Shown: positions 9,743 through 41,300 of the stretch, in pieces
Layout: each line of letters begins with the position of its first letter
Numbering within the stretch: the first letter of the stretch is position 1
Source: Podarcis pityusensis
Lineage: Eukaryota
Strand: one strand, 5' to 3'
Length of the DNA: 64,000 bases
NCBI GenBank assembly: GCA_964106645.2
Contig: OZ067038.1
Translations under genes and position numbers: made by a program
Notes under the pieces: generated by a model
Database searches by the model: none
Told to the model about the DNA's origin: nothing
Seen by the model: only the letters and a program-made list of their open reading frames with translations

Positions 9743-9878
9743 CAGGTGTAGGCAAACTCGGCCCTCCAAATGTTTTGGGACTACAGCTCCCATCACCCCT
9801 GACCACTGGTCCTGTTAGCTAGGGATGATGGGAGTTGTAGTCCCAAAACATCTGGAGGGCCGAGTTTGCCTATGCCTG
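9743..9878. mobile_element. hAT-type MITE (136 bp, near-palindromic)
   Basis: CAGG..CCTG termini, long inverted arms, perfect 8-bp TSD TAGTAGGG at 9735-9742 and 9879-9886. Confidence 0.92.
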
Positions 9879-10282: not shown

Positions 10283-10412
10283 TTGAAATGCTATCACAAA
10301 GAGTTCCGTAGCCCAACTCGAGATGTGATCTTCCGAGTGCAATTCCACACCTGTGCCATTCATGACCTGGCCATTGTCTTCAATAAGGAGGACCTGGATG
10401 ATGCCTTTAAAG
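10283..10412 (+). CDS. TNS1: TNS1 exon (130 nt, phase 0/1): [43 protein letters not shown]
   Basis: Pyrimidine tract plus ggcag| acceptor, AAG|gtaaga donor; FRVQFHT tensin C2 motif. Confidence 0.96.
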
Positions 10413-10470
10413 GTAAGAACAATTGTATAAATGGGAATGAAGGGAAGCTGGCTTAGTAAGCAGAGGATCA

Positions 10471-10598
10471 AATCATAGAATTGTAGCATTGGAAGGGACC
10501 CTGAGGGTCATCTAAGCCAACCCCCTGTAATGCAGGAATCTCAACTAAAGCATGCATGACAGGTGGCCACCCAACCCTTGCTTAAAAATCTCCAATGA
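10471..10598 (-). mobile_element. CR1 LINE 3' fragment
   Basis: atcatagaattgtagcattggaagggacc... resembles the reverse-complemented CR1 3' end. Confidence 0.65.
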
Positions 10599-12024
10599 GT
10601 ATAAGAATGTTGTTGTTTTGTGTTTTTTTTGTTTGGAGAGTGGTGCCCCCTTTCATGTAATGCAGCTTTCCTGTAGTTCCCCTCACTGTGGCACTTAAGA
10701 GTGTAAAGGAATATGCTGTTTATTTATAAAATTTATATACCACTTTAAAAAAAATGCAATGTTCATAAAACTGCATGGAACAATTGCCAATGGGCACAGA
10801 TAAAATCAGGGAAAACTTAAAAGCAAATGCTAAAATCTAGATAGGCTTGTTTAGCTAAATTAAAAAGTATGAGCAAGTGCCTAAAAGAGTAAACAAAGTT
10901 TTCTGCCAGATGTTAACAGCAGAGAGTTCCAAAGGACAGATGCTGCCATGCTGAAAGACTAACTCCCAACAGATGTGAAACAAACATTATATGGCACTTG
11001 TAAAAGTGGAAACTCTGCAGTTTGAAGCACTCATGTAGGCACATGTGGGGCAAATCGATCTTTCAAGTGAACTGGACCCAAGCTGTTATTTTTGGTTTAT
11101 GTTAGGATCAAATCATTTAGTTTGTTGGGCCACAGGTAGATTGAAGGATCTGTTGGTGACTGTAACTATTAACCTTCTCTGGAACTTGGCATTCTATTCA
11201 CTTACATTGTTATCTCTTCCTTGATTTTGATTTGCTGCACTACGCTTCTATTGACCATCATGACATTACCCAAAGTAGTGCAAGAATCAGTTTGGAAGTG
11301 CATAAAAAAGATTCTGCCCCCCACCCCGGGCTTTACAAGCCAATTGAAATACCAGACAGATGAATTGACCTCCTGTCCTCATTCTGATTGTCCTGCCAGT
11401 GTGGTAGGCAGGGACCAGTGCTTGAGAGGGTCATGTGAGTGACTCCTCCATGGCTGCCAGCCATTCCAAGAACAATCCCTCTTCAGTCTTACTTCCATCC
11501 CAAAGCCATCACCTTGGCTCCACTAGAAAAAGAGGAGACTTCATTGTGCTTTATTCGTATAGTGCCAATGCACGTTTGAAGAGGGTGAGCTGCCTGGTGG
11601 TGTGTGAGACAGTTGTTGGCTGTGATAAGAGTGGTCTTCACCAAGAAGTGCAGGGGATGGGAAGAAATGTCATAAACATACTCTCATTAGAGCCAAAGCT
11701 GTGCGGATGTTGTCTCATGGTGAACTATCCTTTGATTGTTCTGTATGGGACAATGACAATAAAGATATCGTATCGTAGCTAGATGAACCGAGAAAAACAC
11801 AGATTATTCATAGTAGTCATAGCCATGAGGATGGGCAACTTGTTGGTGTGAGACCCCAGGATATCTAGACAGTGAAGCAATGATCCCTGTTGGCATATCC
11901 CTAGCAGATCCCCACTGAATTCAGCTTCCCTAGCAGTCATGGTATTGCCCCAGTTTATATGTCCTAAGTCAGTATAGACAGCTAGATATACCTGAATATC
12001 GTTTGGTCTTCTTGTTCATTGCAG

Positions 12025-12090
12025 ACGAGCGGTTTCCAGAGTATGGGAAGGTGGAGTTTGTGTTCTCCTATGGACCTGAGAAGATTCAAG
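12025..12090 (+). CDS. TNS1: TNS1 exon (66 nt, phase 1/1): (D)[21 protein letters not shown], contains the KVEF PP1-docking motif
   Basis: attgcag| acceptor, AAG|gtactg donor; KVxF is the known PP1-alpha site of tensin-1. Confidence 0.96.
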
Positions 12091-12519
12091 GTACTGTGTT
12101 TTCTAATCACCAACCTCTGGCACCTACTGCTCCCATTCCCTGCTTCCTCCCCATTGCCAGGCCCTACAGATCTGTGTCTGGAGCTCCCCGCATGATTTCT
12201 TCACAGCTTGGCCATTCTTTGCTGATAGGGCAGGTAACCTTGCATTGGGACTTCCCCTTCCCCTTTGTCACTGCTGCTGGTGGGCAGAGGGTACTTCAGT
12301 TCACCAGCATCATCATAACTAAGAGCCAGCTGCTGATCCAGTTGAGCCACCTGGTCCTGCTTTTCCTTACCAGCAGACACCTTCTTTCCCCATTCATGCT
12401 TGCCTGGTTGATTGAGGCTTCATCCATGGCATTCCCAAATGTCCGTAGTGGACTCTTCTGGGAATAAAATCTTCCAGATCCATCTTAGGTCCTTGCTTGA
12501 GTGGCAGTTCACTTGGTCT

Positions 12520-12698
12520 TAAGAACTGCCATATACTCAGTCAGACCATTAGTTTGTCTAGCTTAGTATTGTCCACACCTGTGGTAGCTCTCCAGGGTTT
12601 CAGACTGAGGTTTCCCCCAGCCCTGCTTGGAGATGCTGGGGATTAAATTTGGCATTTTCTGCATGTGGATCAGATGCTCTGCCACTGAGCTACAGCCT
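12520..12698 (-). mobile_element. Old tRNA-derived SINE; related copies near 21080-21230, 34210-34395 and 53060-53200
   Basis: Shared ggagatgctggggattgaacctggg...ttctgcatgc...ccactgagct motif (reverse-complemented tRNA head). Confidence 0.6.
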
Positions 12699-12983
12699 TG
12701 CTTGTCCTCAGGCTCTTCCATAGCTGCCCACCCCACCTGCAGCCTCTAACCTTGCGCTGCTCCCCTCTTTCTACCCTTTGATTCCTAACTGTGACTCAGT
12801 TCTGGGTTTTCCTTGCATCATCTGTCTTCTACAGGTTCTGTTTCCCCTTTGTCTTGCTCCCTCTGTCTCTTCCCTTCTTCTTACCTTTTCCTTACCACAT
12901 TGCTGGCTTCTTCTGTGACTGGGCATGCACTGGAAGGGGTCGGCCAGCTCTGTTGCTGAAACCGTGCTGTCCTTCCTCTCCAG

Positions 12984-13100
12984 GCATGGAGCATCTCGAG
13001 AACGGCCCCAGCGTCTCAGTGGACTACAACACCTCTGACCCGCTCATCCGCCGGGACTCCTATGAAAACTTCAACATGCGTCGTGAAGACAGCATGGAGG
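12984..13100 (+). CDS. TNS1: TNS1 exon (117 nt, phase 1/1): (G)[38 protein letters not shown]
   Basis: ctctccag| acceptor, AGG|gtaggt donor. Confidence 0.95.
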
Positions 13101-18772: not shown

Positions 18773-21700
18773 TGCATTTGGCTGTACACAACCCTGCAGA
18801 AACTAACTGCACAACGATCTGCTCACCACTTTTGGCTGCAGAGGCCAGTGGCACAGAACAATGACAATTAATTTCTGCCTAGGGATAGAAGCAATTTCCG
18901 GTTGCAGGAAATTTCACTTCAGGTAATCTCCCTCAAAGCCCCCATCCTGCAAAGTATTTGGTTGTTCTTGCTGCAATATGTTTTTGTTATCTGGCTTTAG
19001 ACTGCCCAGATGTGCTTTGGTGCAAAGTGGCAGGGTATAAATATTGAAATACACAAATTTTAAACCATCAGTTGTGATACTTGTAATTCCCCAGGTCGAT
19101 TCCATGAGCAGATGCCCATGCAAGTTCATGCTCAGGTTACCGAAAGTCTCAGTACTTTACTTTATTTCGCTTTGCTTACTTTCTTTCCATCTGGGACTTC
19201 CCTCCCTGTTCTCAACATCTCCTTTTTCCATAACATGGGAGGCGAGAGGGATAGGATGAGAGAAATGGTCAAGTTTTCTCTTCATACACTACAAGCAAGC
19301 ACAAAGCGCAGGAAGTGCAAATCTACTACTGCTTCCTGTTGCCCATTTATTAAGTAATGTCTGAAGTACTCCAGGATATACAGAGATACAAGCTGGGATG
19401 TAGGCAGATATTTGTTCAGTCTGCTTTTATCAGCTGTTGTAGCAGAGTGACGAAGGGCCAGGTGTGCAATGTATTTGCATGCATCCTGTTAATTTAAGGG
19501 GGGTGGGGTTGAGGAACACACAACCAAACCATTTGGGAATTCTGTCTAGCTGGAGTTTTTGTCAGAAAGAAGGGAAAAAACATGGCCAGCACAGAGCGGT
19601 AGGTGGGTGGGACTGGAATGAAGGCAGAATATTCCTTATTTACAATTTTTCTTGCCATATTTGGCGATGGAGCTGCATGCAGATTTTCTGGCACAGCAAT
19701 AATATGTGTGTGCCTAATGGTCAGGAGAAGCTGGCATGAAGTTGAGGAAGTCAGAGCAAGGCAGGACAGATGGTAGCTTCATCGCCAGAATGCTAACACG
19801 AGAGACACAGACAGAGAGGGATGGGAGGTTTCTCCAGACAATGATGGTTCAGTTCTCAGTGATGTGCAAGATCTTCCTTTTCAAGGGGGTGGGGGGTAGA
19901 TAAATAAGAAAAAGACTTTAATTCCCTTCCTGACTGCCACAAGAAAAGTGTGCCAGTTGGTTGCTAGAGCAGCTTCCTTCTTTTGTAAAGTAGCTGGGGA
20001 TGTTGTGTCGCAGTCTGGATTTGATCTTTTATTAACTGGATTAACAGATGTAGTAGGTAAGGAGCCAGCTACACAGTTGAAATGGCTGAGCTGTTGATCT
20101 AAAGTTTACTCCCTCATCACCACCCCCCACCCGGCCGGCTGCCTGTCCTGCCAGTTGCTGGATGAAGAACTTATGGTTTCTGCTGTGGCATGGGTTCAGT
20201 GGCATAGCAGGTGGTATGCATGGCTAAGCAAGAGAAGATTGGGAGGGTTGGACTAGATGATCCTCTGGATCCCTCCCAACTCTACAATTTTATGGTTTCA
20301 CGTTGATCCAACAAACGAGCCACCCCCTGCCCTTTTTAAAGAGTAGAACAGGTACCACTTTAGTGCAGCTAGCAAGAGGCATCTTTGGACTGGGTGAGCA
20401 AACGGGCACTCCTTCAAGAGGCTAGCAATTGAGCAGTCTCTTTGTACCATCATTTGGCACCTTCTCTGCGAGTGCAGACTCCTGGACAGGAGGATGGTTC
20501 CTGCATGGAAGGGGGCTGGTTGGAAGCATCTGATGACACAAGGGTGGGTACCTGCTCTGACAATCTACCTGGTCCTTCCCTGGGATCCAACTCTGCACCT
20601 GTGGCTTCCTCCTTGGCTGACTCCAAGGTTTCAGATCCTGACCTGCTAGGACCCTCCCCAAGGTCATTGGGCTTCAGGTCTTTGAGCTCATCTCCCCCTT
20701 CTGCCTGATCTGACCATCCCCTCCAGGAAAATCTCCACATGGCTTATGACACCATCCTTCCCTGGTGTACAAGCACATTGGAAGGACTGAAACTCTGAAA
20801 GCAGCTTGTCTTTGCAATGTGCTTCTGCTGTCTCCAGCCCCATCCCCGAATGAAGTTGCAGGACATGGGGGTGTGAGAAGGAACAGCCCACCTGAAGCTG
20901 TGCTGTTTTTCCAAAGCAGAATTAGCATGTTTCTCCAGTGCTACTATAGCTGCAGCCAGAAACTGCTGTCTGGCCATGTGTTGCCTTCTCTGGTTGCTGG
21001 AAAATGTCAGGCTGCAGGTGGTGCGCTGCATGTATGCCAATCTTGTCTGGAACTAGAGTTTTGCAGAGTTCCTCATCCATATAGTTCCATCTAGCACAAA
21101 TCTAATCACTCCTCTTGGCAGTGGCTCTCCAATGTCTCACATAGAAACTTTCCCAACCCCGTGACCTAAGATTGCTAGAGATGATTAAACCTGGGTCTTT
21201 TTGCATGCAAAGTATGTGCTCTATTACTGATCCCATCATTTGTGCCACAATCATCTTTACCATGAGTTATTTTGCCCCCAAAGACAGTGACTAACATGTC
21301 AGCAGAGAAACCAGGCAATAGCAGAACTCACTGCATGAAGGGGTTCCCCCAGTTCAAGTCTGTCTTTAAAACTATGAGAGAGGAGATACCCTTCCATCTT
21401 TTATTCCTAAAATGAAAGCTTGTATGTACAAAGGAGAATTTTAGCAGTGGATACCACTTCTAATATTCAGGTACATAAAACTCATAGGAAATTTGTGGCA
21501 AAACCTCAAGATTTTGCAAGTGAAAATCAAGCAAATGGAGATATTAGATCTTGCTACCAATGAAAACTCAGGGCTTGTGTTTAGAGTTTGTATCCTTTCG
21601 GAAATGCATTGCCTTTAAGCGTAAGTTACTGCTTTGTTTTCTTTCAGCTGAGCCAAATATCTTGGTCCACTGTGCCACTGGCAAATTGCTTCAGTACCCT

Positions 21701-22926
21701 TGCAAATGCATTTGGGCCAAGCTGAGGCTGGTCACATGGATGGGACAATGCCAATGACTTTTCCAAAGATAGACTCTCTGTTACAGATGTTACATTGTTT
21801 GGCCAGAGCTTTGCCCCCACCCTCTTGAATTCCTGCCTCAGTGCTTCCTAGATGAGAAGGGATTCAGAGTGGGGGGAAAGGGGTCACATTCTGCTCAAGT
21901 GCTTCATTAAGAGTCCCTTTGGCCTGGCAATAGCATAACTGGGATACGATGTCTAACTAGGAGTCTGAAAGATGGTGGTGGGGTTTGGGAGCACCACAAG
22001 AAACATGAATACATACACACCATACCAGCCTAGGAAAGAGCCAGTGCAATTGCATTGTAGCTGCATAGAACAGAGGCTGGCACTTATCCAGAAAAGTGCC
22101 CTTTTATTCATCCTCCGCACTGAGAAGATGGTTCCCAGTACAGCGGTATGGTATGTGCTCTGCAAAATCTCAGCACAGCCTAGTGCTGCTAAGCATCTGT
22201 AAAAGTTATTCTCCAGGGCAGAGTTCAGATTTCACAAGGGGTCTACCAAGAAGTTGCAATACTTAATCACAGATTCCAAGGAGCCAGTCATGATAATTTG
22301 CTCTAGTATACTAAGAAGAGCTCTGTGGCACATAAATACTTAAGATTAAATTGGTGCACAGAATACTATATTGCAGAGCCCAGTGTGAAAGAGTTATCTA
22401 AACATTGCCTAACTCACAAGAGTAATCACATTTATTATTATTATAAAAACGAACAGTAGAACTCTCTTTCCATCAAACGTTGATGACAGGGATAGACAAT
22501 GTGGAGCCCCCAGATGTTTCTAGATTGTAACTCCCATCATTCTTGACCTTTGCAATGATAGCTGGTGCTGATGGGAGTTGGAGTCCAGCAGTATCTGGAC
22601 GGCAGCACACTGGTTCCCCCTGGTTTATGTCCAGGTTTTGGTTTAACCATGAACTACCATAGCCTTCATATGCAAATGCTACCAGGGACTGGGGGAGGCA
22701 TCCAACCAAGTAGCTCTGTTAATGCTAGGATTTATATTTTTGCAACCAAACTTCTTCCTCTCTTCCCCATGCCCCCTGGCCCTCCCCAACTCTGCTCCAG
22801 ATGGTTGGGGGACACCCACCCACACCCCGAGCAGACTGGGGGCTGCAGAGAGTGGAAAGGAAGCTGCAGTTCCATTGTGCAGCCAGAAAACTTTGTGCTA
22901 ATGGAACTACCTCCCCACATGTTCTA

Positions 22927-23168
22927 CAGTGATACCTTGGGTTAAGTACTTAATTCGTTCCAGAGATCCGTACTTAACCTGAAACTGTTCTTAACCTGAA
23001 GCACCACTTTAGCTAATGGGGTCTCCTGCTGCCGCTGCGCCACCACAGCACGATTTCTGTTCTCATCCTGAAGCAAAGTTCTTAACCTGAAGCACTATTT
23101 CTGGGTTAGCGGAGTCTGTAACCTGAAGCGTATGTAACCTGAAGCGTATGTAACCCGAGGTACCACTG
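22927..23168. mobile_element. Tc1/mariner (Tigger/pogo-like) MITE, 242 bp
   Basis: TA TSD, CAGTG.TACCT/AGGTACCACTG TIRs, internal TAACCTGAAGC repeats. Confidence 0.9.
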
Positions 23169-23446
23169 TATTTACTTTTTGTCACTTACCGGTAGTTATC
23201 TGTAATCTATCCCCATCCTAAAGGCTAGTGATGGTTAATGCTTCATTTAAACTCCAGGCTTTTAGCTATTTTATCCTGTGGTAGCAAATCCACAGAGTGT
23301 TTTGTCACAGGGTGCCAAGAGTATCTGGTTTTTTTTGCGGCATAAGCTAGAGTGCACATCTACACTTAAGTCTACAAAAGCTTATGACATAATAAAACTA
23401 TTGTATTCAAACTTCAATCCATCTTTATCAACAGGTCCAATAGCAG

Positions 23447-24191: not shown

Positions 24192-24388
24192 ACTAGCACA
24201 GTGTAGTGGATGGTGTGTCAGACGAGAACTGGGATGGCACAGGTTCAAATCCCCACTCAGCCTTGAAGCTCGCTGAGTGATCTTGGGCTGGTTGTTATCT
24301 TCCAGCATGACCTACCTGACAGGGTTGCTGTGAAGATAAAACAGGAGGCAGAGATTTCCTTGGAGGAAGGACTGGATAAAATTGTAAA
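24192..24388 (+). mobile_element. Old tRNA-derived SINE
   Basis: A-box-like GTGTAGTGG, B-box GGTTCAAATCC, ACCTACCTGACAGGGTTG core; inverse relative at 57480-57682. Confidence 0.65.
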
Positions 24389-25044
24389 CAGTAGATTCAA
24401 ATAACTCTGTCAAATGCCTGGGAGAATTCCAAGGGCTGGCCAAAAGCAGAAGAGAGTGGAATTGCCCAACAGTGAGGGAAGGCCTTGTGGTTTGCAAGGG
24501 GGATACTTAATGCTGATTAAACTGCAAGGTAGATGATCTGGAGACAAGGTTCCCTGCCTAGAATTTGCACAGCTAGTTTTCTTGCCCAGTTAATTGGTTT
24601 CAGGAATCTCGGGTTTGGGGAATCCTAATCACATTTTTGGTCTTTGTTCTTGGTTCCTTGAGTAAAGGGGAGATGACCTCCAGAGAACACTTCATCTAAG
24701 AAGGGCAGTCCAACTTTTCATACGGGCCACAAGAGTGCTTTGAAATGGAACTCATAGACCTCGCACTGCCTTGTTGCACAGGGTGTGGGGAGCAAAGCTA
24801 AAATTTGACACACGCAGCCCAGCCCTCACACTTCCTTCCCAAGGCCTTGAGAGCTGCATGCATGTTGGACCACCCTGATTGAAGATCTTAAAAGTACCAA
24901 ATATTCATTTGACGTGCTGGCTGAGCCTGATGGGAGTTATAGCCCCAAACACCAGGATGGTAAATGATGCTCTGTTGGAACACGATCTGCACTAAATCTC
25001 TTGATTCAAAAGGATCAGGAAGAATATTTAAGTTTACACAAATA

Positions 25045-25286
25045 CAGTGGTACCTCGGGTTAAGTACTTAATTTGTTCCAGAGGTCTGTTCTTAAGCTGA
25101 AACTGTTCTTAACCTGAAGCACCACTTTAGCTAATGGGGCCTCCTGCTGCCACCACGCCGCTGGAGCACAATTTCTGTTCTCATGCTGAAGCAAAATTCT
25201 TAACCTGAGGTAATATTTCTGGGTTAGCAGAGTCTGTAACCTGAAGCGTATGTAACCTGAAGCGTATGTAACCCAAGGTACCACTG
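25045..25286. mobile_element. Tc1/mariner MITE, 242 bp, second copy in the same orientation
   Basis: TA TSD and TIRs; colinear with 22927-23168. Confidence 0.9.
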
Positions 25287-25447
25287 TATAGACATTCCCA
25301 GAATAAATAGGATAACTTGGGGGAAATGTAATTAAAATGAAGCATACATTTTTTCCTTCGGTGTATAATTTACAGAGATTGTGGCTGGAGAACTCAGAGG
25401 CATTTATAGTGTACAATTCTAAATCTTCCTGGGCTCTTCAGGATGAG

Positions 25448-25895
25448 TTAAAAATAGCCCCTTTCGTGTATTTTGGAAAGCATGTTTGATCCGTGTATCT
25501 GTGTGTGTATATGTTGGTTGCTGTACACATGCTTGTGCTATAAACTAATACAGTAGCTGCCTGCTGTCGTCAGTGCATGTATATGTTACATGAGGCTCTC
25601 TGCCTTCAGATGTTTGCCATGCTTTCCCCACTAAGTCCATATTGTTATTTACAGCCCACTACGTCGGTTCCTCCCCATCTTTGGTATCATTTTTTAATTC
25701 ACGGAGTTGAGTGCTTGGAGCCCTTGTAAATCATCTGCCTTCACACCAGGGAGCAGAGCAGTAAAGGGGGGCGGGATATATCTAGTTTGCCAGTGAGGTC
25801 ACTGCGGGTTGTGGCGCGGAAAAGGCTCGCAGCAGCTGCTTGTGGCACAAGTGTCTTGTCTCTCTGGCTTGTTAATACCCACAGGGCTATATATA
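25448..25895 (+). promoter_or_regulatory. Candidate internal promoter motif cluster
   Basis: MEF2 consensus TTAAAAATAG 25448-25457, GC box GGGGCGGG 25768-25775, E-box CAGCTG 25833-25838, TATATATA 25888-25895, local CpG cluster. Confidence 0.35.
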
Positions 25896-26174
25896 TTGGT
25901 TTTAGGCAGTATTTCAGATATTCGTGTCACCTTTGTGTCACAGTGTGGATCAGGGCATGCCTAAACCCCAAGCTCCCTCTGTGGGTTAAGTTCCCTCCAT
26001 CAGGCAGAAACCTGTCACAACACCCCATGTTTGCACCCTACCCATATTCCCAGGATCATCTTGTGTCTCTTGCCCTCCATGTTTAACATTCATTGCATCT
26101 ATACCTTTTGGACAAGACTAAACAGATTAAATCCAAGCTTGCTGCAAGAGCTCCCATCCAGTGCAACTACTGTC

Positions 26175-26208
26175 ATGGCCCCAGCCTTGAGCCCAATCCC
26201 AGAGGAGG
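26175..26208 (+). CDS. Candidate alternative first coding exon of TNS1 (MAPALSPIPEE)
   Basis: gtcATGG Kozak context, AGG|gtaagc donor in phase 1 compatible with the 43556 acceptor; no expression evidence. Confidence 0.45.
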
Positions 26209-27095
26209 GTAAGCTAGGGCTGCTGTTCCACCAGCTGATAACTGGACCGGGATCTTGACACCGAACTTGTGGTTAGTGGTCAACAGCTGGTAGAAGCCAA
26301 GCCTGGACTCTAGTGAGCATCTTCTTCCATGCCCACTTCACCTGAATCAAATGCCTCCCTCTACACTGTACCTGCCCAGCAGGAGGCTACAGAAAGAAAA
26401 AGTGCTAGTCTGTAGGCCTAGTGGGTGACCCATTAAGGATTCACCCTCTTCAGGGAAGCAGGTGGAGCTTAGGAGTGGTGCATGGGATGGACAGACTCAC
26501 AAGGCCTCTGTTCACCACCAGCCTTGTTGGAGCAATTTGCTCAGTTGATCTTTCTATGATGCTGTCTTGTGAATCCATCAGTCCATCAGTACAATTATTA
26601 GGATATGCTTTGCAAGAATCCATTTGCAAGAACACCGATTGAAATTTACGAAAACTGGAAAGACAGAATGAAATGTTCATTAAATCTATTGTTCAGCTCT
26701 AAAATGTAGCATCACTTAATATGTTTACCTCGAGCAATAAATTTAGAGAAGTAATCCAGATTAATATACAGATATTATAAGAAATGATTACGGACCTTTT
26801 GAAAGTTGTTGACTTTCACCAGGATTTAAATTTCAGAGATAAAATGAAGGAGCCGAAAATGCCTTATTTGTTTTTTATACTTTTTTTAGTAGGCATTTTC
26901 CAAGGACCATCAGAAAAAAATGGTTCTGCAGAAGTGTATAGGATATATTTTCTTGCTGTTTGGTTGGGGGGGGGGGGGTTAGGGTCTGAGATACAGGCTG
27001 TGTCATGCGTGCCATAAATAAGCCACACTGGGTATATCAATTTTAGTTATTTAGAATGCACCGCAAATCTTCCACACACGAACTGCTGCCTAACT

Positions 27096-27350
27096 GGAGC
27101 CAACATGGTGTAATGGTTAAGAGTGGTGGACTCATAATCTGGTGAACCGGGTTCGCTTCCCTGCTCGTCCACATGCAGCTGCTGGGTGACCATGAGCTAG
27201 TCAAACTTCTCTGAAGTCTCTCATCCTCATGCACCTCACAGAGTGTTTGTTGTGAGGGAGGAAGGGAAAGGAGATTGTTAGCCGCTTTGAGACTCATTAA
27301 GGGGAGTGAAAGGTGGGATATAAAATCCAAATTCCTCCTCTTCTTCTTCT
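27096..27350 (+). mobile_element. tRNA-derived SINE with (TTC)n tail (Squam3-like)
   Basis: TGGTGTAATGG A box, GGGTTCGCTTCC B box; reverse complement of 32273-32553. Confidence 0.8.
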
Positions 27351-27385
27351 GCTCACTGTCCCATCAAGTGGTCACTAACTTGATA

Positions 27386-27735
27386 GTAAAGGTAAAGGGA
27401 CCCCTGACCATTAGGTCCAGTCGTGGCCGACTCTGGGGTTGCGGCTCTCATCATGCTTTATTGGCCAAGGGAGCTGGCATACAGGTTGCGTGGCCAGCAT
27501 GACTAAACCACTTCTGGTGAACCAGAACAGCACACAGAAATGCTGTTTACCTTCCCGCCGGAGCGGTCGGTACCTATTTATCTACTTGTACTTTGACATG
27601 CTTTCGAACTGCTAGGTTGGCAGGAGCAGGGACTGAGCAACAGGAGCTCACCCCATCACGGGGATTTGAACCGCCGACCTTCTGATCGGCAAGCCCTAGG
27701 CTCTGTGGTTTAACCCATAGCGCCACCCATGTCCC
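27386..27735 (-). mobile_element. Sauria SINE, full length
   Basis: Reverse complement of the 9207 family; perfect 9-bp TSD AACTTGATA at 27377-27385 and 27736-27744. Confidence 0.9.
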
Positions 27736-29095
27736 AACTTGATATATCACTTTATTTATTTATTTATATATTTATTATTAAATATATATCCTGCTAAGCA
27801 TAGCCTAGTGGAACCTTCAGGTAGGCTAACAACATGTACCAAAGAATGTGACACAGAAGGAATTCCCCATCACCACTCATAGGACAGGTAAGAGGAGAAC
27901 CAACAAACTGAGATCATACCAGCTCCCAACTCGGCAAGGTGACCCAGAAGGATCCCATGGCTCATGGTACTAAAAGCAGCAGAGCAGTCCAAGGAAACCA
28001 ACAGTTTCACACTTCCTCCACAATAGAGAACAAAACAAGGCCCAAAGCCAGATCAATACGAAACACAATGGCCAGTATCACCCAGCACTCCCTGGAAATG
28101 AGTTATCACCCCCATCTGACCATCTTGCTTGAGAATAGTATATTAGAAACTGGCTCCTAATTATTTTGCAACAGAAGGATAAAATGTGGGTACAGCATGT
28201 ATTTGCTGATGGTCAGGCTAAGTCCCTGGTAAGAACCCCCTACACATTAATTCCCAAACTATCCTTAATTTAATAAGCTCTATGGACTTGAAAATTCATC
28301 TCAGTCTCTTCTGCTACAGAGACAGTAAATAAATCTGGGCCTAACCATGCAGGGCCAATAGAAATAGATCTCCCAGAGTGAGTTTATTTAAGGGACTGTC
28401 TCTGTAAGGCACCATATTTATCCTGTTTGTCCAGGGTTTTGTGGCTGCCTCATAAATAGCATTTAGGGTCGGAGAAGAGCAGCAGCGAATGTAACCAAGC
28501 TACTGTGGGTTCCTAAATCATCCTGGGATACTGAGAAAGAGAAATGATCAGGGGGCATTTGTGTGGGAAGGATGTGAAGTTGAATATCAACAGACTGTCC
28601 CTGGCAGCCACTTCCGTCTGTGTATTTGTGGCCACCCTGTGTTGTTGTGATGGGTGGCCATCTTGGGAAAGTGACGAGATCCTGATGTGCCTGTAGTATT
28701 TAAGGGGCAGTTGTGGTGGGGGGACGATAGAGAATTGGACTTGCTACTCATTTTCACATGTCACTTTCTTGAAATATTGCAAATATAGAGCAGCAGTACT
28801 TCCTAGCATTTGGTTTGGGCCGTAGGTCTGCTGGGCATGGATCTACAAAACAAACAAAGAGAATGTACTATTTAATACAGCCAAAGATGGCATTTATTTT
28901 CTACATTCAAATGAAGCTTTAAAGAGGGTGAATGAAGTAGCATTCTCTACCTTCGTAAGCAGTTTCCTGCTGTGAAATTAACACAATGTGGATTTTTTTG
29001 AAGTGGAGCTCCATTTTCCTCAATATGTTCTTCTTTCATATCATCATGTCAGTTGCTTTCAGTGACAGGGAAGTGGCTCTCTTGATTCTCTAAAT

Positions 29096-29228
29096 CAGGC
29101 GTAGGGAACCTTTGACTCACCAGGTGTTGCTGAACTACAACTCCCACCATCCCTGGCCATGCTTGCTGGGGCTAATGGGAGTTGTAGTTCAGCAACATCT
29201 GGAGGACCAAAGGTCCCCCACACCCCTG
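29096..29228. mobile_element. hAT-type MITE; decayed relatives near 3490-3590, 17000-17140, 22485-22620, 32215-32600 and 52960-53060
   Basis: Inverted ACTACAACTCCCA/TGGGAGTTGTAGT arms; imperfect 8-bp TSD ctctaaat/ctgtaaaa. Confidence 0.8.
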
Positions 29229-29367
29229 CTGTAAAAGGTTTCCTGAAGCCCTTTGAAAGGACTAAGAGCTGTTGGAATGACTACTTTTTCACCCACGGCC
29301 CACTCAACAACTGCAAGGCCTTTACCTTTGGTTTCCTCACCTGCCTAATACTGCTGACAGACATATA

Positions 29368-29748
29368 AAGATAAAGGGACCCCTGACAGTTAAGTCCAGT
29401 CGCGAACAACTCTGGGGTTGCAGCCCTCATCTCGCTTTACAGGCCGAGGGAGCCAGCGTTTGTAGACTCCACAGACAGTTTTCCTGGGTCATGTGGCCAG
29501 CATGACTAAGCCACTTCTGGTGCAACAGAACACTGACACCGGAGCAGCGCACGGAAACGCTGTTTACCTTCCCACCAGAGTGGTACCTATTAATCTACTT
29601 GCACTTTTTGGCGTGCTTTTGAACAGCTAGGTTGGCCGGAGCAGGGACAGAGCAATGGGAGCTCACCCTGTCGCAGGGATTTGAACCGCCGACCTTTTGA
29701 TTGGCAAGCCCAAGCGGCTCAGTGGTTTAGACCACAACACCACCCGCT
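29368..29748 (-). mobile_element. Sauria SINE
   Basis: Similar to the 27386 copy; flanking GACATATA duplication. Confidence 0.87.
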
Positions 29749-30194
29749 GACATATACTTTGAAACAAATGAGCAGAAATCCATCCTGGTGCTGATCTCAG
29801 GGCAGCTCAGCTCAAAAAGGCCTTAAGAGGCCCTATATGTTCCCATCTTGCCTCCCCCACTGACTCTTCTCTCTCTTTTCATCTTCTGAGTGCCTCTCAT
29901 TTCATGCCCACAACACTCATTTTGTTCTTGGGATGTTCCCAAGCAAAAACTTCACAAATATGTGGTGGGAATTGTGGGCTTGATTCCAGTACTTCATAGT
30001 CCTGAAGGTGTGTGTTCTGAATTCTCTTCCGTAGCTTGTCCCCTTGCTCAGCTACTCTCAGAGGTTCAGCTGTAACTAGAAGGATACAGGAGTGGGAGAG
30101 GGATGTGGAAGAGTCATTTTTGTATGGAATTATGATTTATCATTTTATACTACTAATAAAAGGTGGGAAAAAAATGGTGTGAAGTTGGTAGAAA

Positions 30195-30656
30195 GTAAAA
30201 GCTATGGTTTTCCCAGTAGTGATGTAGGGAAGTGAGAGCTGGACCATAAAGAAGGCTGATCGCCGAAGAATTGATGCTTTTGAATTATGGTGCTGGAGGA
30301 GACTCTTGAGAGTCCCATGGACTTCAAGAAGATCAAACGTACCATTCTTAAGGAAATCAGCCCTGAGTGTTCACTGGAAGGACAGATTGTGAAGCTGAGG
30401 CTCCAATACTTTGGCCACCTCATGAGAAGAGAAGACTCCCTGGAAAAGACCCTGATGTTGGGAAAGATGGAGGGCACAAGGAGAATGGGACGACAGAGGA
30501 CAAGATGGTTGGATAGTGTTCTTGAAGCTACCAGCATGAGTTTGACCAAACTGCGGGAGGCAGTGGAAGACAGGAATGCCTGGCGTGCTCTGGTCCATGG
30601 GGTCACGAAGAGTCGGACACGACTAAACGACTAAACAACAACAACAACAACAACAA
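30195..30656 (+). mobile_element. BovB/RTE LINE, 5'-truncated 3' fragment with (AAC)n tail
   Basis: ESWTIKKA-RRIDAFELWCWRRLLRVPW and LQYFGHLMRR-LEKTLMLGK-VHGVTKSRTRLND peptides; TAG at 30225 and a frameshift near 30340. Confidence 0.92.
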
Positions 30657-31291
30657 GGCTCAGTATCTCATTAGCATCTTTCTGTGGTGTTTGTTGAACG
30701 CAAAGTTCTTTCTCTGTTTGAACAGTGACTCCTTTGCCCAAATCCTTAGTCCATCACCTTCCATGTCTATCTTTTGATAGTGTTGTTGCTGTTGCTTAAA
30801 TCTCAAGCCAGGGAAAATACATTATTTAGAACCTTTTCTTTTCTGAAAACTCTTAGGAAATGTTCTTTACAAATCTTTAAATATTTAATTTGCACTTGGA
30901 ACCTCAAGATCTTTTGGTTAGGACTGAGGCCACAAGTCATCCAAACTCTTTGTCTAAGAAAAACAAATGCTTGGTATATATCTTTGTTTTTTGAGATTCC
31001 ATAGTGCTGCTTGTTAAAAATGAGTCGATGGATGTTTCTTTATACGCTTGTTTCAGTGTTGTATAGGTTTTGATCTTAGCTATTTAGCAGCTGACCTCTT
31101 GCAAAACTTATCCTAATAGTTATAACAGTGGAGCTGAGCTCTTGTGATAACTTTGTGTTTACTCCAGTGCCACACAACTTGCTCAAAGGATCAACATGCA
31201 ACAGAAAATAGCAAAATGGGAGTTATGCTGTGCATGGACTTCATAGGTTTTGGTAACAGCATGGTGTGGAGTGTACCAACTTGTTTTTCCC

Positions 31292-31292
<1 letters not shown>

Positions 31293-31326
<34 letters not shown>

Positions 31327-31728
31327 TTATTATTTATACCCCACCCATCTGGCTGAGTTTCCCCAGCCACTCTGGGCGGCTCCCAATCAAATGTTAAAAA
31401 CAGTACAGCATTAAATATTAAAAACTTCTCTAAACAGGGCTGCCTTCAGATGTCTTTTAAAGATAGGATAGCTGCTTATTTCCTTGACATCTGAAGGGAG
31501 GGTGTTCCACAGTGTGGGCGCCACCACCAAGAAGGCCCTCTGTCTGGTTCCCTGTAACCTCACTTCTTGCAAGGAGGGAACCGCCAGAAGGCCCTCGGCG
31601 CTGGATCTCAGTGTCCGGGCTGAACGATGGGGGTGGAGACGCTTCTTCAGGTATACAGGACCGAGGCCATTTAGGGCTTTAAAGGTCAGCACCAACACTT
31701 TGAATTGTGCTCGGAAACGTACTGGGAG
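31293..31728 (-). mobile_element. L2-clade LINE 3' fragment with (TTA)n tail
   Basis: LVLTFKALNGLGPVYL...RTLRSS...APTLWNTLP...FKRHLK peptide; (AAT)n at 31293-31327. Confidence 0.85.
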
Positions 31729-32272
31729 TGATCAATCCAGGGATCATCTTAGCACCTGCACAGTTTGTGAGCCTGAGCAATGCCACTGGGCTTATGTGCC
31801 CAGAGCCTCCGTCCTGTTTACTAAATGGCAGCCATTTTCCTTTTTCAGAGTGGGCTTTAATTTTACATTTAGTCTGTGGCTGCTGCGCCTGCACTTGATG
31901 ACAGTCTGACCTAATTTGGCACATATGACTAGGGGAATCTGCTCATCCATCTGGGTGAAGCAGATGGGTTGGCACATATTGAAGTGCTGCTGGGAGCATG
32001 GGAATGAAAATATTCCCTTCTACAACTCAGAAATGAGAAACGCAGATAGTGCCGTGATGGTGAGCGCATGTGAAATACAGAGGATGCAAGCTGCCAGGCA
32101 TACAGCTGTGCACATGAGTTTGCCTCATGGCTGAAGAGGAGGGATAAACTGTGCGTTTGACACTGCCCATTTGAAGGGAACGTTTCCTCAAGGGAATGTT
32201 TAATGCAGGGAACAACCAGTGCGGTGCCTTTCAGATGTGGTTGGACTCCCCGTTCCAACTAGCATGACCAAT

Positions 32273-32553
32273 AGAAGAAGAAGAAGAAGAAGAAGAAGAA
32301 GAAGAAGAAGAAGAAGAGTTTGGATTTGATATCCCGCCTTTCACTCCCTTTAAGGAGTCTCAAAGCGGCTAACATTCTCCTTTCCCTTCCTCCCCCACAA
32401 CAAACACTCTGTGAGGTGAGTGGGGCTGAGAGACTTCAAAGAAGTGTGACTGGCCCAAGGTCACCCAGCAGCTAAATGTGGAGGAGCGGAGACGCGAACC
32501 CGGTTCCCCAGATTACAAGACTACCGCTCTTAACCACTACACCACACTGGCTG
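32273..32553 (-). mobile_element. Squam3-like SINE with (GAA)~15 tail, inserted in a hAT MITE
   Basis: CpG-retaining reverse-complement relative of the 27096 copy; MITE halves lie on both sides. Confidence 0.82.
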
Positions 32554-35500
32554 TAGCCAGGGACAGTGGGAGTTGTAGTTCAACAACATCTGGAGGGCAC
32601 AGATTCTTACTGAAAACTTCTTGCCTTAGACTTCTCTCCTTCAGCTCACCTAAGCAGACTTGACAAAGAGTTCTCCTTTGGGAAACGTATCTATTGTGCT
32701 TCTGTCCCATTTTCTGCTTTTTAATTGTCTGCAGCTCTTATTGATCCTGTCACTTAATGTGGCTTTTGTTTAATAAGATAATATAAGGGCCTTTTTGAAG
32801 GCAACCTGGGTCCTGTGGGGTACTATGGGTGCTGTCCTTTGATTTGCCACCCCAATGGGCATATGTGTCATTAGGAGCACAGCCCATTGCCCCCGCCCCC
32901 ACCCCCAGGAACATTAAAATGAGAAGGGTGGTATTGGTCTCAAGCCCAGCATAAAGAAGTATGAACTCAAGAGTGAAAAGACCACAATAGTCAATACACT
33001 TTCAAACCACAGAAAAGCTGGCGGAGGTGAGTGATTGACCGCCTTTCACATTGAGTTGTGCCTTCTGTCTGCCTGAACTGCTAAAGCTATCGACAACCCA
33101 CATGAAACTCCCATCAGCAGGCGTAAGGCTTTTGTTTTCACCATTGTGTCTGGCTCCTTCACCCTCTCTCCCCTCCTTCCCTCCCCTCGCTCTTGCCTGT
33201 AGGGAGATGGAGGCTGTCTCCTTGCCTTTCAACAGCTGACTAAAGCAAGAGGAATCTACCTTCTCTGCTCCCTCCCCCTTTTGTTGGCATGGACAGCCTC
33301 TACTGTGGTCTGAGTTTTCAAGGTGCAGGACTAGGAGCTGGCGGGAAGTCTTCTTGACTGCCGCAGTGCAGAAGCCTTTGCTGTGAAATAGGGACAGCCC
33401 TGCTCTGAGATATGGTGCATTGCAGGGCTGGCCCACCCATGAGGCAAGGTGAGGCGGCTGCCTCAGGCAGCAGGATCTGCAGGAACAACAGATCCAGCCT
33501 CCAAGGAATCCATTGCCCACTGCTACTGCATTCCCCCCTTGCCCCCATTGTAGATCTTCACCCCTCCCCCTTGTTTTTGATGCAGGTCTTCACTCACCCT
33601 TTCTTCCCTGGTGGGTGGGGAGGCATTTTGTGGTTTGTCTCAGGTGCCAAAATGTATTGGGCCAGCCCTGGTGCATTGTGTGATATGATGTGGAAGCAAC
33701 ACCACCTTCCTCTGAAAATACCTTCCAACTTTGGAGTTAAGCCTTGGACAATACATCTTTCCATATCTGCTCAGGCTGGACCATGCCCCCTGAATCTTTA
33801 TGTCTTCTAAATAGGTACCCCACCTGCCCCACCACCATGGGTCATTGTTAGAAAACCTCCCCACCTTCCATTCCAGAAGCTCTGAAGTTGTGCTCCAGGT
33901 GTCATCCTGAAAAACACTAGTAGAGCACTTCAAAGAAGGCATCATTCCCATTGTGGGGTTTTAGTTTTAAAGCGATTTTGGTGCACTGGTACTTTGCCTA
34001 TGCCAACCCAGTGGACTCGCAACAAGTATCATCCTGAACAGCCCTGATTCACAGAACTGTGAAATGCAAATGGATAAAAGTAGGAAGCAGGCATTCTTCT
34101 GTGCAGAGTGAGAATGACACTGGTGTTTGATGGGCCCTTCCCCAATCTTGGGGCCTTAGCCAATGGCCAACAACACTCCCCTGAGGAGCCTGCCCTGGCA
34201 GATGTGGGGAACATAAGAAGCTCTGTTATGCGGAGTCAGACCTCTGATCCATCTAGCTCAGGCTTGTCTGCACTGACTGGTAGTGACTCTCTCAGATTTC
34301 AGACCTACCTCCCAGTGCTACTTGGAGATGCTGGGGATTGAACCTGGGACCTTCTGCAAGCAAAGCAGATCCTTGACCACGTAGCAAAGGGCCTTATAAT
34401 GTCACCTTTCGTTTGCAGTTGCTAACACTCAGGAGAGCTTAAAATGTATTTAGAGTTGCATTCTGCAAGCTGGCTCTACCTCTCAGGGGCAGACCCTGGC
34501 ACTGTCCATTCTTCACTTGAAGTGGTGAACGACATCATCTACCTTCCTCTGAAAGGAAAGGAGGCACTTTTTTTGTTGTTAGGACAAGGATATGAAAAAA
34601 ACAAAGCAAAGATGTTCTTTTTCACTTCCAAGATTCCCTTCAGTTGCAAGCCAGCCTGAGTAATAAGAGTGTATTTGGCTGGAATTGTTCTGGGTTTTTT
34701 TTGGGGGGGGGAGAATGTGCACACCTCCCTGTCCTGCATCTGACTGTGAATACAGCAGGAGCATCAAATGACTATATCACTCAGTTGCAACAGTACTAAT
34801 AAAGCTTCAGCCTCTGAACAGTCTTGGAGAAAAAAAAGTTTTAAAGCCCCACTAAGTTACATGATGATGACAACGATGGTGATGTATTAAATTTATATAC
34901 TGCCCTTCATCCGATTCTGCTCTGCCCACCATGGTGAATGATGAGGGCTTGGCTTCAAACTAAGACATCTTTTCTGATGTAGGTTGCAAGGCGGTGGGGA
35001 GAAGGCTGGCACCTCCAATCCCCAGGAACTTGGGTGAGGAGAAAGAATATGATGGGAGTTTATAAGAGAAGCAGGGAAGCAGCGAGACAGTGCTGGTGTC
35101 AAGAAGCGTGAAGGAGACTTGATATTTAGTTTTCTGTTGGTCTAAACCCATCAGTCCATTAGTTTTAACACAGCGAAAGGTGTGGACTTGACCCAAACAG
35201 TGTTCTTTAAATGCCATCTGCCCTTATTTAAAACCAAGGCTGCTGGGCGCGGGGGGGGGGGGGTGAGGAGAGGAATTATGCCTTTCTATGTCTTCATTGT
35301 TCAGCAGCTGGAAAAATGCTGCTGTGGTTGTGTGAGGTCCCTCTGGAAGAAAAAGAAAAGTTTTGGCGAGTATGGAATGGAAAGGAATGATCTGGCTGTG
35401 TCTCTGGTCTCCTCCCCTTTGGGCAGAACTGTCTCTTTTTCTCTCTCCCTCTCTCCCTCCAGCTGCACTCTTTTTCCACTCCCTTCTGTCATTCTGCCTC

Positions 35501-37882
35501 TTTCCCCACCTCTTTCCCTCCCTCCTGCTCCCCCCCCACCACTCCCCAACTCTCTGTGCCTCTCAGTGACTTGTGTTGAGCATTTCAGTGGCTGGGAGCT
35601 CCCAGCAGCCCTCCTTCTTCCATGCTCCGGTCACTCAGCCTCTTCTGTGATGTCATTTCTGAAATCACATAACTACGGGATGATAAGTGGAGCCCTCGGG
35701 ATCTGACTGGCTGAAATTACAGACAGGGTTTTATCCCACTCGCTTCCTACAAGCCAGGGGGAAAATAAACCTCACTCCCATGCCTGACAGATGGAAAGGC
35801 AGTGTGCTCCAGCAGGGTCTTCCAGGAGCAGCCGCTGCAAACTTCAGCTCTGAAGAATAAATAGCCAAGCCCAGTTTCTCTCCAGCTGAGGAGAGGCTTT
35901 CCTGTGCGGTGAGTTTACCTTCCCTGTCTTGGGGTTCAATTTTTCTCTTGGGATGATCCGTGCTCAGAGTGTTCAGTCCTTCCCACCTGGGTTGATGGTG
36001 CTGGGAGACAAGGAGCAGTTTCTTGATATTGCAGCAGCCTCATAGCAGAAGCTAGGCTGGCACTGAGGTTCAGAGTACACAGTGCACACAGCTCTCCTGG
36101 TGGAACTGCGGCGTAGCCTTGCCCCCTCAGGGTCTTCGCCTACCTACAAAGAGAGCATCTTGTGCAGGCCACTCTAACTGCAAGCAAACTGGAAATCTGC
36201 CCAGGGCAAGCCACTTTCTGATTATAATTATCATTGGGTTTTTTTTGTTTTTTGTTTGCAACATACACAAATAGAAGCCTTGTAGTATTAACTTGATTGA
36301 ACTTGTGTGAGTTAATCTTCACAGCATGCCCACTCAAGGTGTTTTCGTCATCTGCCATGTGTTAAGACTTGTCACACAGTTTCTCGGGATGGCACAAGGG
36401 TGACAGGATGCAAAAGCTTTACCTAGAGGTTTCTGGGTGCAAATCAGTACTCTCTGGGGTCAGTGGGGGCTGGCGGGCTGAATCCTACCAAACGTACCTC
36501 TCAGGGTACTACTACATACTGAGCACAGGTTGAAAGCTGAACCCAGTGCTAACTGCAGTCCTCAGGGAATGGGAACTGAACTCTGAAGAATAATCCAGCC
36601 TCCCCAACCCCATCCCACCCAAAGCTGAATATTTGATTTTGTACTCTCTTGTCTTAGGGGTTGTTGTTTACTCCGACATGTAAACGATTCCTTCGCGTTC
36701 GTATTTTTACGCAGGGATGCAGCTGACGCCACCCAGGCTTGCAAAAAGTATATTTGGAATTGACTTTCATTTCATTTTCATTTCCAGAAAGCTGGACTCT
36801 GTGCCAATTGGCACCACTGCCTTTCTTACTGCTGCTTCTGTTTATATCTTTTGTCTATCTGGACATGGACTTGTTCCTTTTTGTATGTGGGGTGAGGGGT
36901 GCAAGATATGTGGCCAAGGATTCAGGGAGACAGAAAACTGCTTGAGTATACTGGTATATTATTTTCAATTTTGGTGAAAGAAGTGCAGCTTCAAAGGCTG
37001 GGTGTGGTATATGCCCACCTGGCTAGGCTGGTCAATATCCATCAGTGAAGCAGAGAGCGGGGGTGAGATCCGGAGGGGAAAGGGCTTGTTTTCTCCTGGT
37101 GTTGAGATCCCCGTTCTTGCATCTGAATCAATACAGATAGCTCCAGCTACTTCTTCCCCCTTTCATACCATCGCAGTATCAAATGCCTCTGACAGCTCTG
37201 GCAGCTGGGTCAATAAACAAATGGGTGTTCTTCCTCCTCCCTTCATGTCACTTGACTGAATAGCTCTGCTGGCACTCATTACCGTAACAGAGGAGATGGA
37301 CAAGAGGGGCACCTGTTACTAGTAAGCTGGGCATCGCAACAGGTTTTTGTTGTTGTTTAGCTTCTGGGGAATTGGCCCTTGTGTTAGCTGGAAACAATCA
37401 TTGAGTGCGTGCAGGAGAGAGTGACAAACAAAATGTTAAAATAAATCTATTGACAGAGGGCATGTGAGGGTGGTTTGACCTGTGGATTCCTGTTTGTGGC
37501 ACATATGGTGATTCTCCATCATAATAGGGTGCCAGCGGTAATGTTGATCTCTCTTGGAAGAGCTCACAGAGATGGCAAACAGAGACAGTGAGGAGCACTG
37601 CAGTTGTTCACCTGCCTGGATCTTTCATTTCATTGTAGTTTCACAAGTCTGCTGACTGGTTTTTGCCTATTGGAAGCAAAACCTTATATTCAGGAGGCTC
37701 AAAAAGCATGAACTTTGGAGGTAAAACCCATGACTTCTGTGGCAGCTGTTTACCTGTGAGAGCAGCCTGTGCAGAAGGACGGGGGGGAGGAGAGAGAACA
37801 CACAATGGCCTTGGTGCTGGGTTCGTAGTTGCCTCTAGGGAAGGAAGAGGGTACCAGAGGTTTTTATGTGGCTGGGCCCCCA

Positions 37883-38384
37883 TTTTTTTTTATAAGATAT
37901 TTATTAAGATTTTTTTAAATATTACAATAACAAATGAAAAAGAAAAAACAAAATAAAAATGATTAAAAACCACTCAATTTTTCCATTGCTTATTTTTCCT
38001 TAGCTTGTTTCCCGGACCTCCTCATACCTCCCTTTTTTGTATTCCAGTTCAGTTTGTTGGTTCAGCAAATCCTTACCCTCTTTATTTGTCCTAATCTTTG
38101 GTCTTAAAATAGTAATGTTAGATTTTTACCTCTTAGCAACCCATTTTTCATATTCCCTTAAAGCATTACAGCTGGAAACCACTTTATTTCTATCCAACAT
38201 CGTTCTAACATTCATTAATTTTACAATATGTCTGTAGATAATCTTTGAACTTCTTCCAATCTTCTTCCACCGACTCTTCTCCCTGGTCTCGGATTCTGCC
38301 AGTCATTTCTGCCAGTTCCATATAGTCCATCAACTTCATCTGCCATTCTTCCAGAGTGGGTAGATCTTGTGTCTTCCAATACTT
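37883..38384 (-). mobile_element. L1-clade LINE, 5'-truncated, with poly(A) and long TSD
   Basis: Minus-strand open peptide KYWKTQDLPTLEEWQMKLMDYMELAEMTGRIRDQGEESVEEDWKKFKDYLQTYCKINEC*; TSD TGTGGCTGGGCCCCCA at 37867-37882 and 38385-38400. Confidence 0.88.
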
Positions 38385-41300
38385 TGTGGCTGGGCCCCCA
38401 TTGCTCGATGCACATCGAGGGTCGCCACCTCTGTGTGGTCCAGTAGCCCCTCTGGATTAGGTCTGAAAATACCAATGTGAAAGCAGACTTGAACTGCACA
38501 TCGTTTCTGTACCATAATGCCACCTCTAAGGAGAAACATAGACAACCCAAATTTTGTTGATTTTATCTATAACTTTTGATAAAAAACTTTACAGTATTTT
38601 ATGTAAACTGCTAAGGTCTTTTTCTTTTTCTTTTGATCAAGCGGTCCATTGCATTTTGTTAAGTAGAATAAACAACCCCAACTGTTTCCTGCAGCTGCTG
38701 CTGTTATGTAAAACAACAAAATGGTGGGCACACCTGATCATAGATGCTGAATTGCATCTGACTTGGCCCTGATCTGTCATACCTTGATGTGAACTTCTCG
38801 CTTGCCACAAATATTGTTAGGCCCATTTTCATCCTCAACAGTGAGGGTACACAGCAATGTAAGCCCTATGGAACCGAGGCACCCTGGACATCCTCAAGTC
38901 CCCCCACCCTTCTTTTGCTAAGTGGCTTGTGGCATGTTCAGACTGGCAGGATGGTGGTCGACTAAGTTCTACTCAAAGTAGACCAGCTGGTATTAATAAA
39001 CATAACTTAGTGGCGCTAATTAATTTCAGTGAGTTGACTTTGAGGAAAACTGAACTGAATACCATCCTCAGTATTTTGTGGGAGAGATTCAAGTGTCTGC
39101 CGGAACTTTAGGTTTGCACAGTTAAAGTGGATTACAGGCTTCTGTCACCCTTGCGTAGCAAATCCACTAAAAAGGGGAAAGAAAAAAACCCCAGACTTTT
39201 TGTGATTTGGAAAGTGATGGAGAAATGCATTGAAAAATGCATGAACACATGTAAATCGGGTTGAATGCTCATTGCCATATACTGTAACTGTTCTGTAACG
39301 CATTGGAACAAGTGCTGAATAAAGACCAGACATAGTCTAACAGCTGGGTAAGCTCCGTGCAAGCAGATCAGGGTGAATGGTAAATAAACAGATCCTCTTA
39401 ATGTGCTCTTTCCCCTCTGAAAATGGCATTTCAGGGGAAAGGGATGAGTCTCTTTCCTCTGTGTCCCCTACTAATGTTACCGTGGGCCTTTCAAATAGGA
39501 TGACACTCAGGGTGCATTCTGGGATGTTTTCTGGCTGTGTTTGCAATTTAAAAATAATCACTTGAGCTTGGCAGAAGGATAACTTTGAGAGGGTTCTACT
39601 GGCACCAATAGGCGGATGCTGGTCCCATTGACCAAATAAAGATACATGTGCTCCCCCTTTTTCTTTTGTTCCTCTGTTTCCTATTAGTGCCACCTGCCCC
39701 ATGTGCTTAATACAGCAGCAACACCAAGAGACCTGGACAAATTCACCCATGGCCACAGTTCCATCTTTCTCCACACAAACTATCTGAGGGAGGTGGTTAG
39801 AGATCTGGAGAGCTGGTGTTCCTTCAAGAAAAGTGGGGAGTGGAGTGAACTTTCTCCTCCAGTATTACTTTGTGGCTTCCCCACAAAGTTCACCAGTTGA
39901 TTTGAGGGCTATGTGTGTGGTTGCCCAGCCCTTGGGAAGAATGTTAGAGCTTCGTCCCATCCTTTTTAAAGCGAAGTGGGAGGCATGCCAGCCGATGGGC
40001 AACCTGGGCTACAAATAACCATTGTGGGAAAAGGTCAGTTTAGAGAAGCTATGTATGGAGAGCTGCTTCTCAAAAGGGGCCAGAAATTATTTGATAGGCT
40101 TGGGTCAGCTGGATACATAGAAAACACTGGGAGGTAAGCTAGTATATTTTATGGCTGCAGCTTTGTGAATACATATGTCTGCGTTCTCTGGAAAACAGTT
40201 ACTTTAAATAAATTTTGGAATGGTGCTGAATGTGTATCCCATACCACTGTCCCATAATTGCTGGTGTGTGAAAGAATGTACATTATGTGCCGCTGCTTCT
40301 CTGGGCATATACTGGTTAAGCACAACTGTCTCTGTGTGTATTTCTTGATGGTTACTCTGTGTATACACATATAAAAAGTGTGATTGTTGCTTTTGAGTAG
40401 TATTTTATATGCAATTGGTGGTGGTGGTTATTCTGAGTCCATGTCTGTTCCCGTTTGCTGAATATTTGTGTGTGCTACACCCACCCACACCCCTATAAAC
40501 ACCCAAGTTTGGTATTCTCTTCTCTCTTTTTGAAGTATTCTACAGCTTTAGTAGCTGAGAAAGAGGGGAGTGAAGTAGGGCTTGGTCTCAGTGAAGACAA
40601 CACAACTTTACTTGGTTGTCTGCCTTGTGTGATGGTTGGTCTAAACCTATTTTCATTTTCTGCCTGCTGCTTCTGTGTGTTTGTGTTTGTGTGTGAACAT
40701 GCTTGTGCTTAGGTAGTGTTCTGTAGGAAAGAAATTGGGCTTCCAGTTGGCAGGTTAGAACTTCGAAGCAGTTACGGAAGTGCTTGCTGTTTGCAGATAG
40801 GAGCCCTATGACTTCACACTCTTCCATTAGGCCATCTTCCGTTCCTGAAGTCAATCCTTGGCTTATTGCCAGATAGAAGTCACTTTTTCCCCTAAATGAA
40901 AGCATTCCATATTGTGGTGCAGCCAGTTCCAGGAAACCTCACAGGAGACCTAAGAAAAAGGCAGAACGTTTCTGTGTGAGAAAGAAAGGATCCTCCAGCA
41001 TGAGCTGGAACTCATGTTGAAACAATCCTATATCCCAAATTGCTTTGTTTTCTGTGCAATTAAACATTGCCATTTTTAAAAAATTTTTTATGTTTCATGA
41101 GCCCACTTCATGCATGCTTAAAATCCCTTCATGGAGCAGTCCTGAAACCTCAGCTGCAAAGAGAAAGTTATGTGTGATCTAATGAGACCATATAGTTTTC
41201 CATTGATGATTACACAAGCACAAGAGTATAATAAAAATTGTTGTTGTTGTTATGTAATAATGTATTAGATACCATGGTTTTAAGTCATGGCTTCTTAAAA

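Follow-up and report, generated by a model that had tools for sequence, protein, structure and literature searches.

A candidate internal promoter and coding first exon in the tensin-1 gene of the lizard Podarcis pityusensis

Results

The long intron of the tensin-1 (TNS1) gene of Podarcis pityusensis contains one place, and one only, where promoter motifs, a Kozak ATG, a strong splice donor and the right phase coincide. We tentatively interpret this place as a minor internal promoter with its first exon, restricted to lacertids or squamates and one of several TNS1 starts in the intron. Two other putative internal promoters of the same intron are better supported by the sequence comparisons than the candidate at 26175, and were predicted from conservation rather than from reads. 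All coordinates refer to the window, the whole stretch of 64,000 nucleotides that was analyzed (Table 1).

The window is identified by its sequence as the middle of lacertid TNS1, on the plus strand. The large exon is 99.65% identical to that of Podarcis raffonei and 99.1% identical to those of Lacerta agilis and P. muralis, which bears out the tensin-1 assignment made in the preliminary description of this DNA; KVEF is likewise present in the exon to which it had been assigned. In P. raffonei X1 (1914 residues), the large exon begins at residue 487 and KVEF lies at residue 434, within C2. Downstream of the acceptor at 43556, the domains of this protein are SH2 and PTB only, SH2 (residue 1155 of the downstream part) being the first Pfam domain. 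In birds and some turtles, not in squamates, the exon before the intron is extended by about 15 codons via a downstream donor (L002 15226-15279; L005 1434-1479).

Table 1 Features of the TNS1 window.
Feature	Position	Strand	Remarks
PTP and C2 domain exons	2472-13100	+	
KVEF-encoding exon (PP1-binding motif, end of C2 domain)	12025-12090	+	Skipped by any internal start
Final canonical exon ahead of the intron	12984-13100	+	Phase-1 donor
Long intron	13101-43555	+	30.4 kb
Putative internal promoter A (competing)	19624-20056	+	CArG box 19655-19664; donor after 20056 is strong; lacks an open in-frame ATG
MEF2 consensus match	25448-25457	+	8 such matches in the window; lies 160 bp past a MITE-like repeat
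Mild CpG cluster	25600-25950	.	Observed/expected about 0.45-0.5
GC box	25769-25774	+	One of 4 in the window
E-box CAGCTG (myogenic-type core)	25833-25838	+	One of 49 in the window
TATA box TATATATA	25888-25895	+	Sole copy in the window
Upstream ORF 1	25957-25989	+	10 codons
Upstream ORF 2	26027-26086	+	19 codons; overlaps ATG 26079
Acceptor-like site	26030-26054	+	Exon would start at 26054; permits an internal exon
Weak in-frame ATG	26079-26081	+	Would add 32 residues
Candidate coding first-exon segment	26175-26208	+	11 codons plus 1 base; contains LxxIxE
Phase-1 GT donor	26209-26214	+	Strength matches several real donors of the gene
Putative internal promoter B (competing)	35281-35908	+	Donor after 35908 conserved; stops close its ATGs
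Large TNS1 exon (acceptor)	43556-45292	+	First in-frame Met 43876, GCCGCCATG context

Sequence features of the candidate first exon

The ATG at 26175 has G at both -3 and +4 and opens the reading MAPALSPIPEE. The last exon base is 26208, followed by the GT at 26209 (AGG/GTAAGC); the 34 coding bases give phase 1 and the codon joined to 43556 is GAG, so that the splice frame proposed earlier is correct. The donor scored 4.7 bits, within the range of 0.8-7.4 for the real donors of the gene, on an approximate vertebrate matrix. Upstream of the ATG, the window contains MEF2, E-box, GC box and TATA sequences, all as consensus matches. The TATA box, E-box, MEF2 match, Kozak ATG, upstream ORFs and weak ATG lie where the preliminary description had listed them; its GC box is also present, starting at 25769 instead of 25768. 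A muscle-type specificity of the promoter is suggested solely by such consensus matches. The surrounding CpG content is in the top 3% among 300-bp windows of the intron, yet forms no island.

A MITE-like repeat ends at 25289, upstream of the candidate promoter, and 25290-27097 had no match within the 317 kb of squamate and bird DNA compared. This absence of a repeat match and the mild CpG excess favor a genuine promoter. The repeat is one of two 91%-identical copies (22925-23171 and 25043-25289) of a MITE-like element that is 247 bp long and contains a 16-bp tandem, and SINE-like repeats occupy 24201-24334, 27098-27353 and 27387-27749. A 20-mer beside the site (26342-26361) gave three hits in a metagenome scan, all unrelated and attributed to chance.

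Under the interpretation that we prefer, the TATA promoter with its GC box and E-box would initiate transcription near 25918-25920. Ribosomes would pass the two upstream ORFs and the weak ATG and start at 26175, and the first exon would be spliced from 26208 to 43556. The product, of up to about 1440 amino acids, would lack C1, PTP and C2, hence KVEF, and would retain the disordered region, a talin-binding-like helix, SH2 and PTB. Its motifs, frame and domain content are read directly from the DNA; transcription, splicing, translation, binding and tissue of the isoform are predictions.

Rarity of the arrangement

We compared the intron with a Markov null. Donors of this strength numbered 12 against 11 expected, and ATG-donor pairs 2 against 2.9 expected. 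A Kozak ATG in phase 1 with an equally strong donor is expected 0.54 times per 30-kb intron, which falls to 0.033 when a TATA box 40-450 bp upstream is added and to 0.003 when LxxIxE is added as well. The cluster of TATA, GC box, E-box and MEF2 occurred in 0 of 400 simulated introns. The arrangement thus exceeds the chance expectation for one intron, tempered by the facts that the scored features were picked post hoc and that a genome has thousands of comparable introns.

It is quite possible that the site is an ordinary stretch of intron in which a TATA box, an ATG and a donor coincide, and that genuine short TNS1 would arise at the conserved promoters of 19.6 and 35.5 kb and begin with Met 43876. 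The donor and ATG-donor counts agree with that reading, as do the 20 LxxIxE matches in the six frames of the window, the absence of the N-terminus from the annotated proteins collected, the missing counterpart in birds and, with so many introns per genome, the coincidences that would be expected in some of them. The joint cluster of promoter motifs speaks against it: of the five sense TATA boxes in the intron, none besides that at 25888 has more than one companion motif. The post hoc choice of motifs and the three upstream ATGs, in turn, weigh against the candidate as a first exon.

Annotated tensin proteins

We collected 552 proteins by one profile search, three homologue searches (318-3200 amino acids) and cluster listings. 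The candidate N-terminus occurred in 0 of the 552 tensin proteins (for the lacertid cluster, among the 15 of 89 members listed). The canonical junction is present in the 142 TNS1 proteins of squamate type, which come from about 30 species. All isoforms of the nearest outgroup, Rhineura (X1-X15, full isoform listing), and all those of Hemicordylus and Varanus, for which the listings were nearly complete, are full length, and no short squamate RefSeq isoform was among the matches of a search at 513-1633 amino acids. These results count against the candidate. Short unrelated proteins (P0322, P0546 and P0548) are clustered with tensins in the protein collection, so that cluster membership is noisy.

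The general idea of the preliminary description, a TNS1 without PTP/C2 whose promoter lies within this intron, nevertheless holds. Internal starts that use the acceptor are of a known kind. Short RefSeq isoforms of parrots (Pezoporus X13, Neopsephotus X12), degu (Octodon X12) and sloth (Choloepus X8) enter 43556 via other, lineage-specific first exons. They share with the candidate the acceptor, the domain loss and a unique N-terminus; none of them has LxxIxE. A degu-like MGRALRVK at 18696 was rejected, as it runs into a stop. Gene models of Xenopus tropicalis, Eleutherodactylus, Columba and Naja begin at a Met inside the large exon.

Conservation of the candidate and of two other putative internal promoters

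Tiles over 25300-26400 gave null-median scores against the sparrow intron (gapped) and a second, gapless bird intron, with no counterpart, although four other lizard blocks (19.6, 33.2, 35.5 and 40.8 kb) align or tend to align in order with birds. The gapless bird intron contained no LxxIxE. The expectation that the exon would be conserved thus failed in the two bird introns. A 20-base sparrow match near ATG 26079 was set aside as chance, since 8 of 202 reverse-strand tiles scored as high and a deletion removes the match in the second bird. Among the squamate loci compared, that of Lerista (skink) begins at about 28.8 kb and that of Naja (cobra) at about 29.7 kb, the candidate being at 26.2 kb. 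The 3 kb of gecko DNA upstream of its 27.4-kb anchor, mostly repeat DNA, had no match to the candidate; another gecko 'anchor' at 24150 is the head of a SINE.

The CArG element in 19624-19694 is kept in both birds, and the segment is likely an SRF-type internal promoter. The alternative first exon of parrots lies in the bird segment syntenic with 19.6 kb, whose donor follows about 270 bp later, and not in the counterpart of 26.2 kb. The highly conserved squamate block at 35281-35908 includes a CT-rich stretch. Gecko, skink and cobra show 74-83% identity over this block, about 130 bp of which form a nearly invariant core; its donor is kept in 4 of 4 squamates (GTGAGT or GTAAGT), and in sparrow the syntenic DNA forms a CpG island. 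The block is likely an internal promoter with a non-coding first exon of TNS1. Since neither putative promoter has an open in-frame ATG, transcripts from both would start at Met 43876, after two short upstream ORFs, and would encode no LxxIxE. This Met (GCCGCCATG context) is kept in all squamate loci, is conserved from frogs to snakes, and is the start in several gene models.

Further conserved blocks were observed in the intron. Non-coding 40678-41054, kept in gecko, skink, cobra and both birds, is the strongest bird match of the intron and a probable enhancer. All squamates share the block at 32930-33419, with weaker conservation in birds. At its edge, a further Kozak ATG with a phase-1 donor (33412-33448) is not kept in gecko. 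Additional blocks conserved among squamates are 36618-36871, 37052-37686 and 39409-40298.

The candidate could instead belong to an internal exon, 26054-26208, which is unlikely. Joined to an upstream non-coding exon (donor 20056), it would provide the same start codon; joined to the exon ending at 13100, it would shift the frame into stops and act as a poison exon. A pyrimidine-rich CAG acceptor at 26054, the length of 155 nt, the stops in the phase-1 reading and the conserved upstream promoter A are consistent with such an exon. The acceptor is only moderate, however, and the TATA cluster 160 bp ahead of it would be left unexplained.

The LxxIxE motif

The preferred PP2A-B56 consensus has L1, I4 and E6, acidic residues at 7-8 and Ser-Pro at 2-3 (PMC10970375). 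The candidate motif, L1-S2-P3-I4-P5-E6-E7-E8, has L, I and E at positions 1, 4 and 6, with S2, E7 and E8 as acidic or phosphorylatable positions; V9 is not acidic. It therefore fits the B56 preference, as the preliminary description had claimed. The motif sits in an N-terminal tail, outside folded domains. In a subset of B56 binders, a basic patch precedes the motif by no more than about 15 residues (PMC7108865); just four uncharged residues precede the candidate motif, with no such patch. LxxIxE was found nowhere else in squamate TNS1 proteins. The peptide, if made, would probably bind PP2A-B56, and selection on the motif is not indicated. Loss of PP1 binding would accompany any internal start, and, with no conservation found, the motif could be incidental.

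Discussion

Internal promoters are used by tensin genes (PMC11702514, PMC9596163), and the closest parallel to our candidate is the erythroid eTNS1 (TNS1-208), which was experimentally shown to have an internal promoter and a short unique coding first exon (9 amino acids) and is primate-restricted (PMC11702514). The internal promoter, the short coding first exon, the loss of PTP and C2 and the lineage restriction would be common to both. Unlike the candidate, eTNS1 starts one intron later, past the large exon, is LINE-derived, and is driven by GATA1/TAL1; the candidate, a putative exon, would keep the large exon and contains no recognized repeat.

Truncated products also exist among other tensins. 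TNS4/CTEN is a tensin without the N-terminal PTP-C2 region that keeps SH2-PTB. A short TNS3 isoform similarly lacks PTP-C2 and keeps SH2-PTB (PMC9596163). These differ from the candidate in being a separate gene or a much shorter product, and no B56 motif has been described in them.

Among PP2A-B56 ligands, the BubR1 KARD motif (PMC10970375) shares L1, I4, E6, Ser-Pro at 2-3 and acidic 7-8 with the candidate, which differs from known docking motifs in having no upstream basic patch and in being known from sequence alone. Repo-Man also docks PP2A-B56 through LxxIxE. We found no literature that describes LxxIxE in a tensin or a first exon of TNS1 used in muscle.

The preliminary description had further proposed that promoter choice could switch the recruited phosphatase from PP1 to PP2A-B56. 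KVxF in C2 binds PP1-alpha (PMC9687257) and KVEF would indeed be lost, but the switch was overstated, because KVEF is lost with any internal start in the intron, and an isoform from either of the two better-conserved promoters would not contain LxxIxE. In its full form, as an old, muscle-regulated exon that selection has kept to replace PP1 with PP2A-B56 at adhesions, the model agrees with the preferred B56 residues of the motif, its uniqueness within squamate TNS1 and the PP1 binding of KVEF, but is very improbable given the exon's absence from two bird introns and from the annotations of the about 30 squamate species covered, the missing N-terminal basic patch (PMC7108865) and the generality of KVEF loss.

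A younger variant, in which a squamate- or lacertid-specific muscle promoter produces a PTP/C2-less tensin-1 that recruits PP2A-B56 to integrin adhesions by a motif born from intronic DNA, is doubtful as well. If it applied, a single scaffold would exchange its phosphatase according to the promoter used. The disordered region of tensin-1 contains a counterpart of the talin-binding helix of tensin-3 (PMC9462884), and the short form would retain this region. TNS1 adhesion behavior depends on phosphorylation and on the disordered region (PMC13396368), and therefore a B56 anchor could matter.

The more robust finding of this study is the pair of conserved putative promoters at 19.6 and 35.5 kb, which suggest that sauropsids generally have a short TNS1 that begins at the conserved internal Met. 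The candidate at 26.2 kb is now a testable lead in one lizard lineage. If used, it would yield a tensin-1 with a novel N-terminal truncation and would exemplify how a short docking motif can be acquired with a young first exon.
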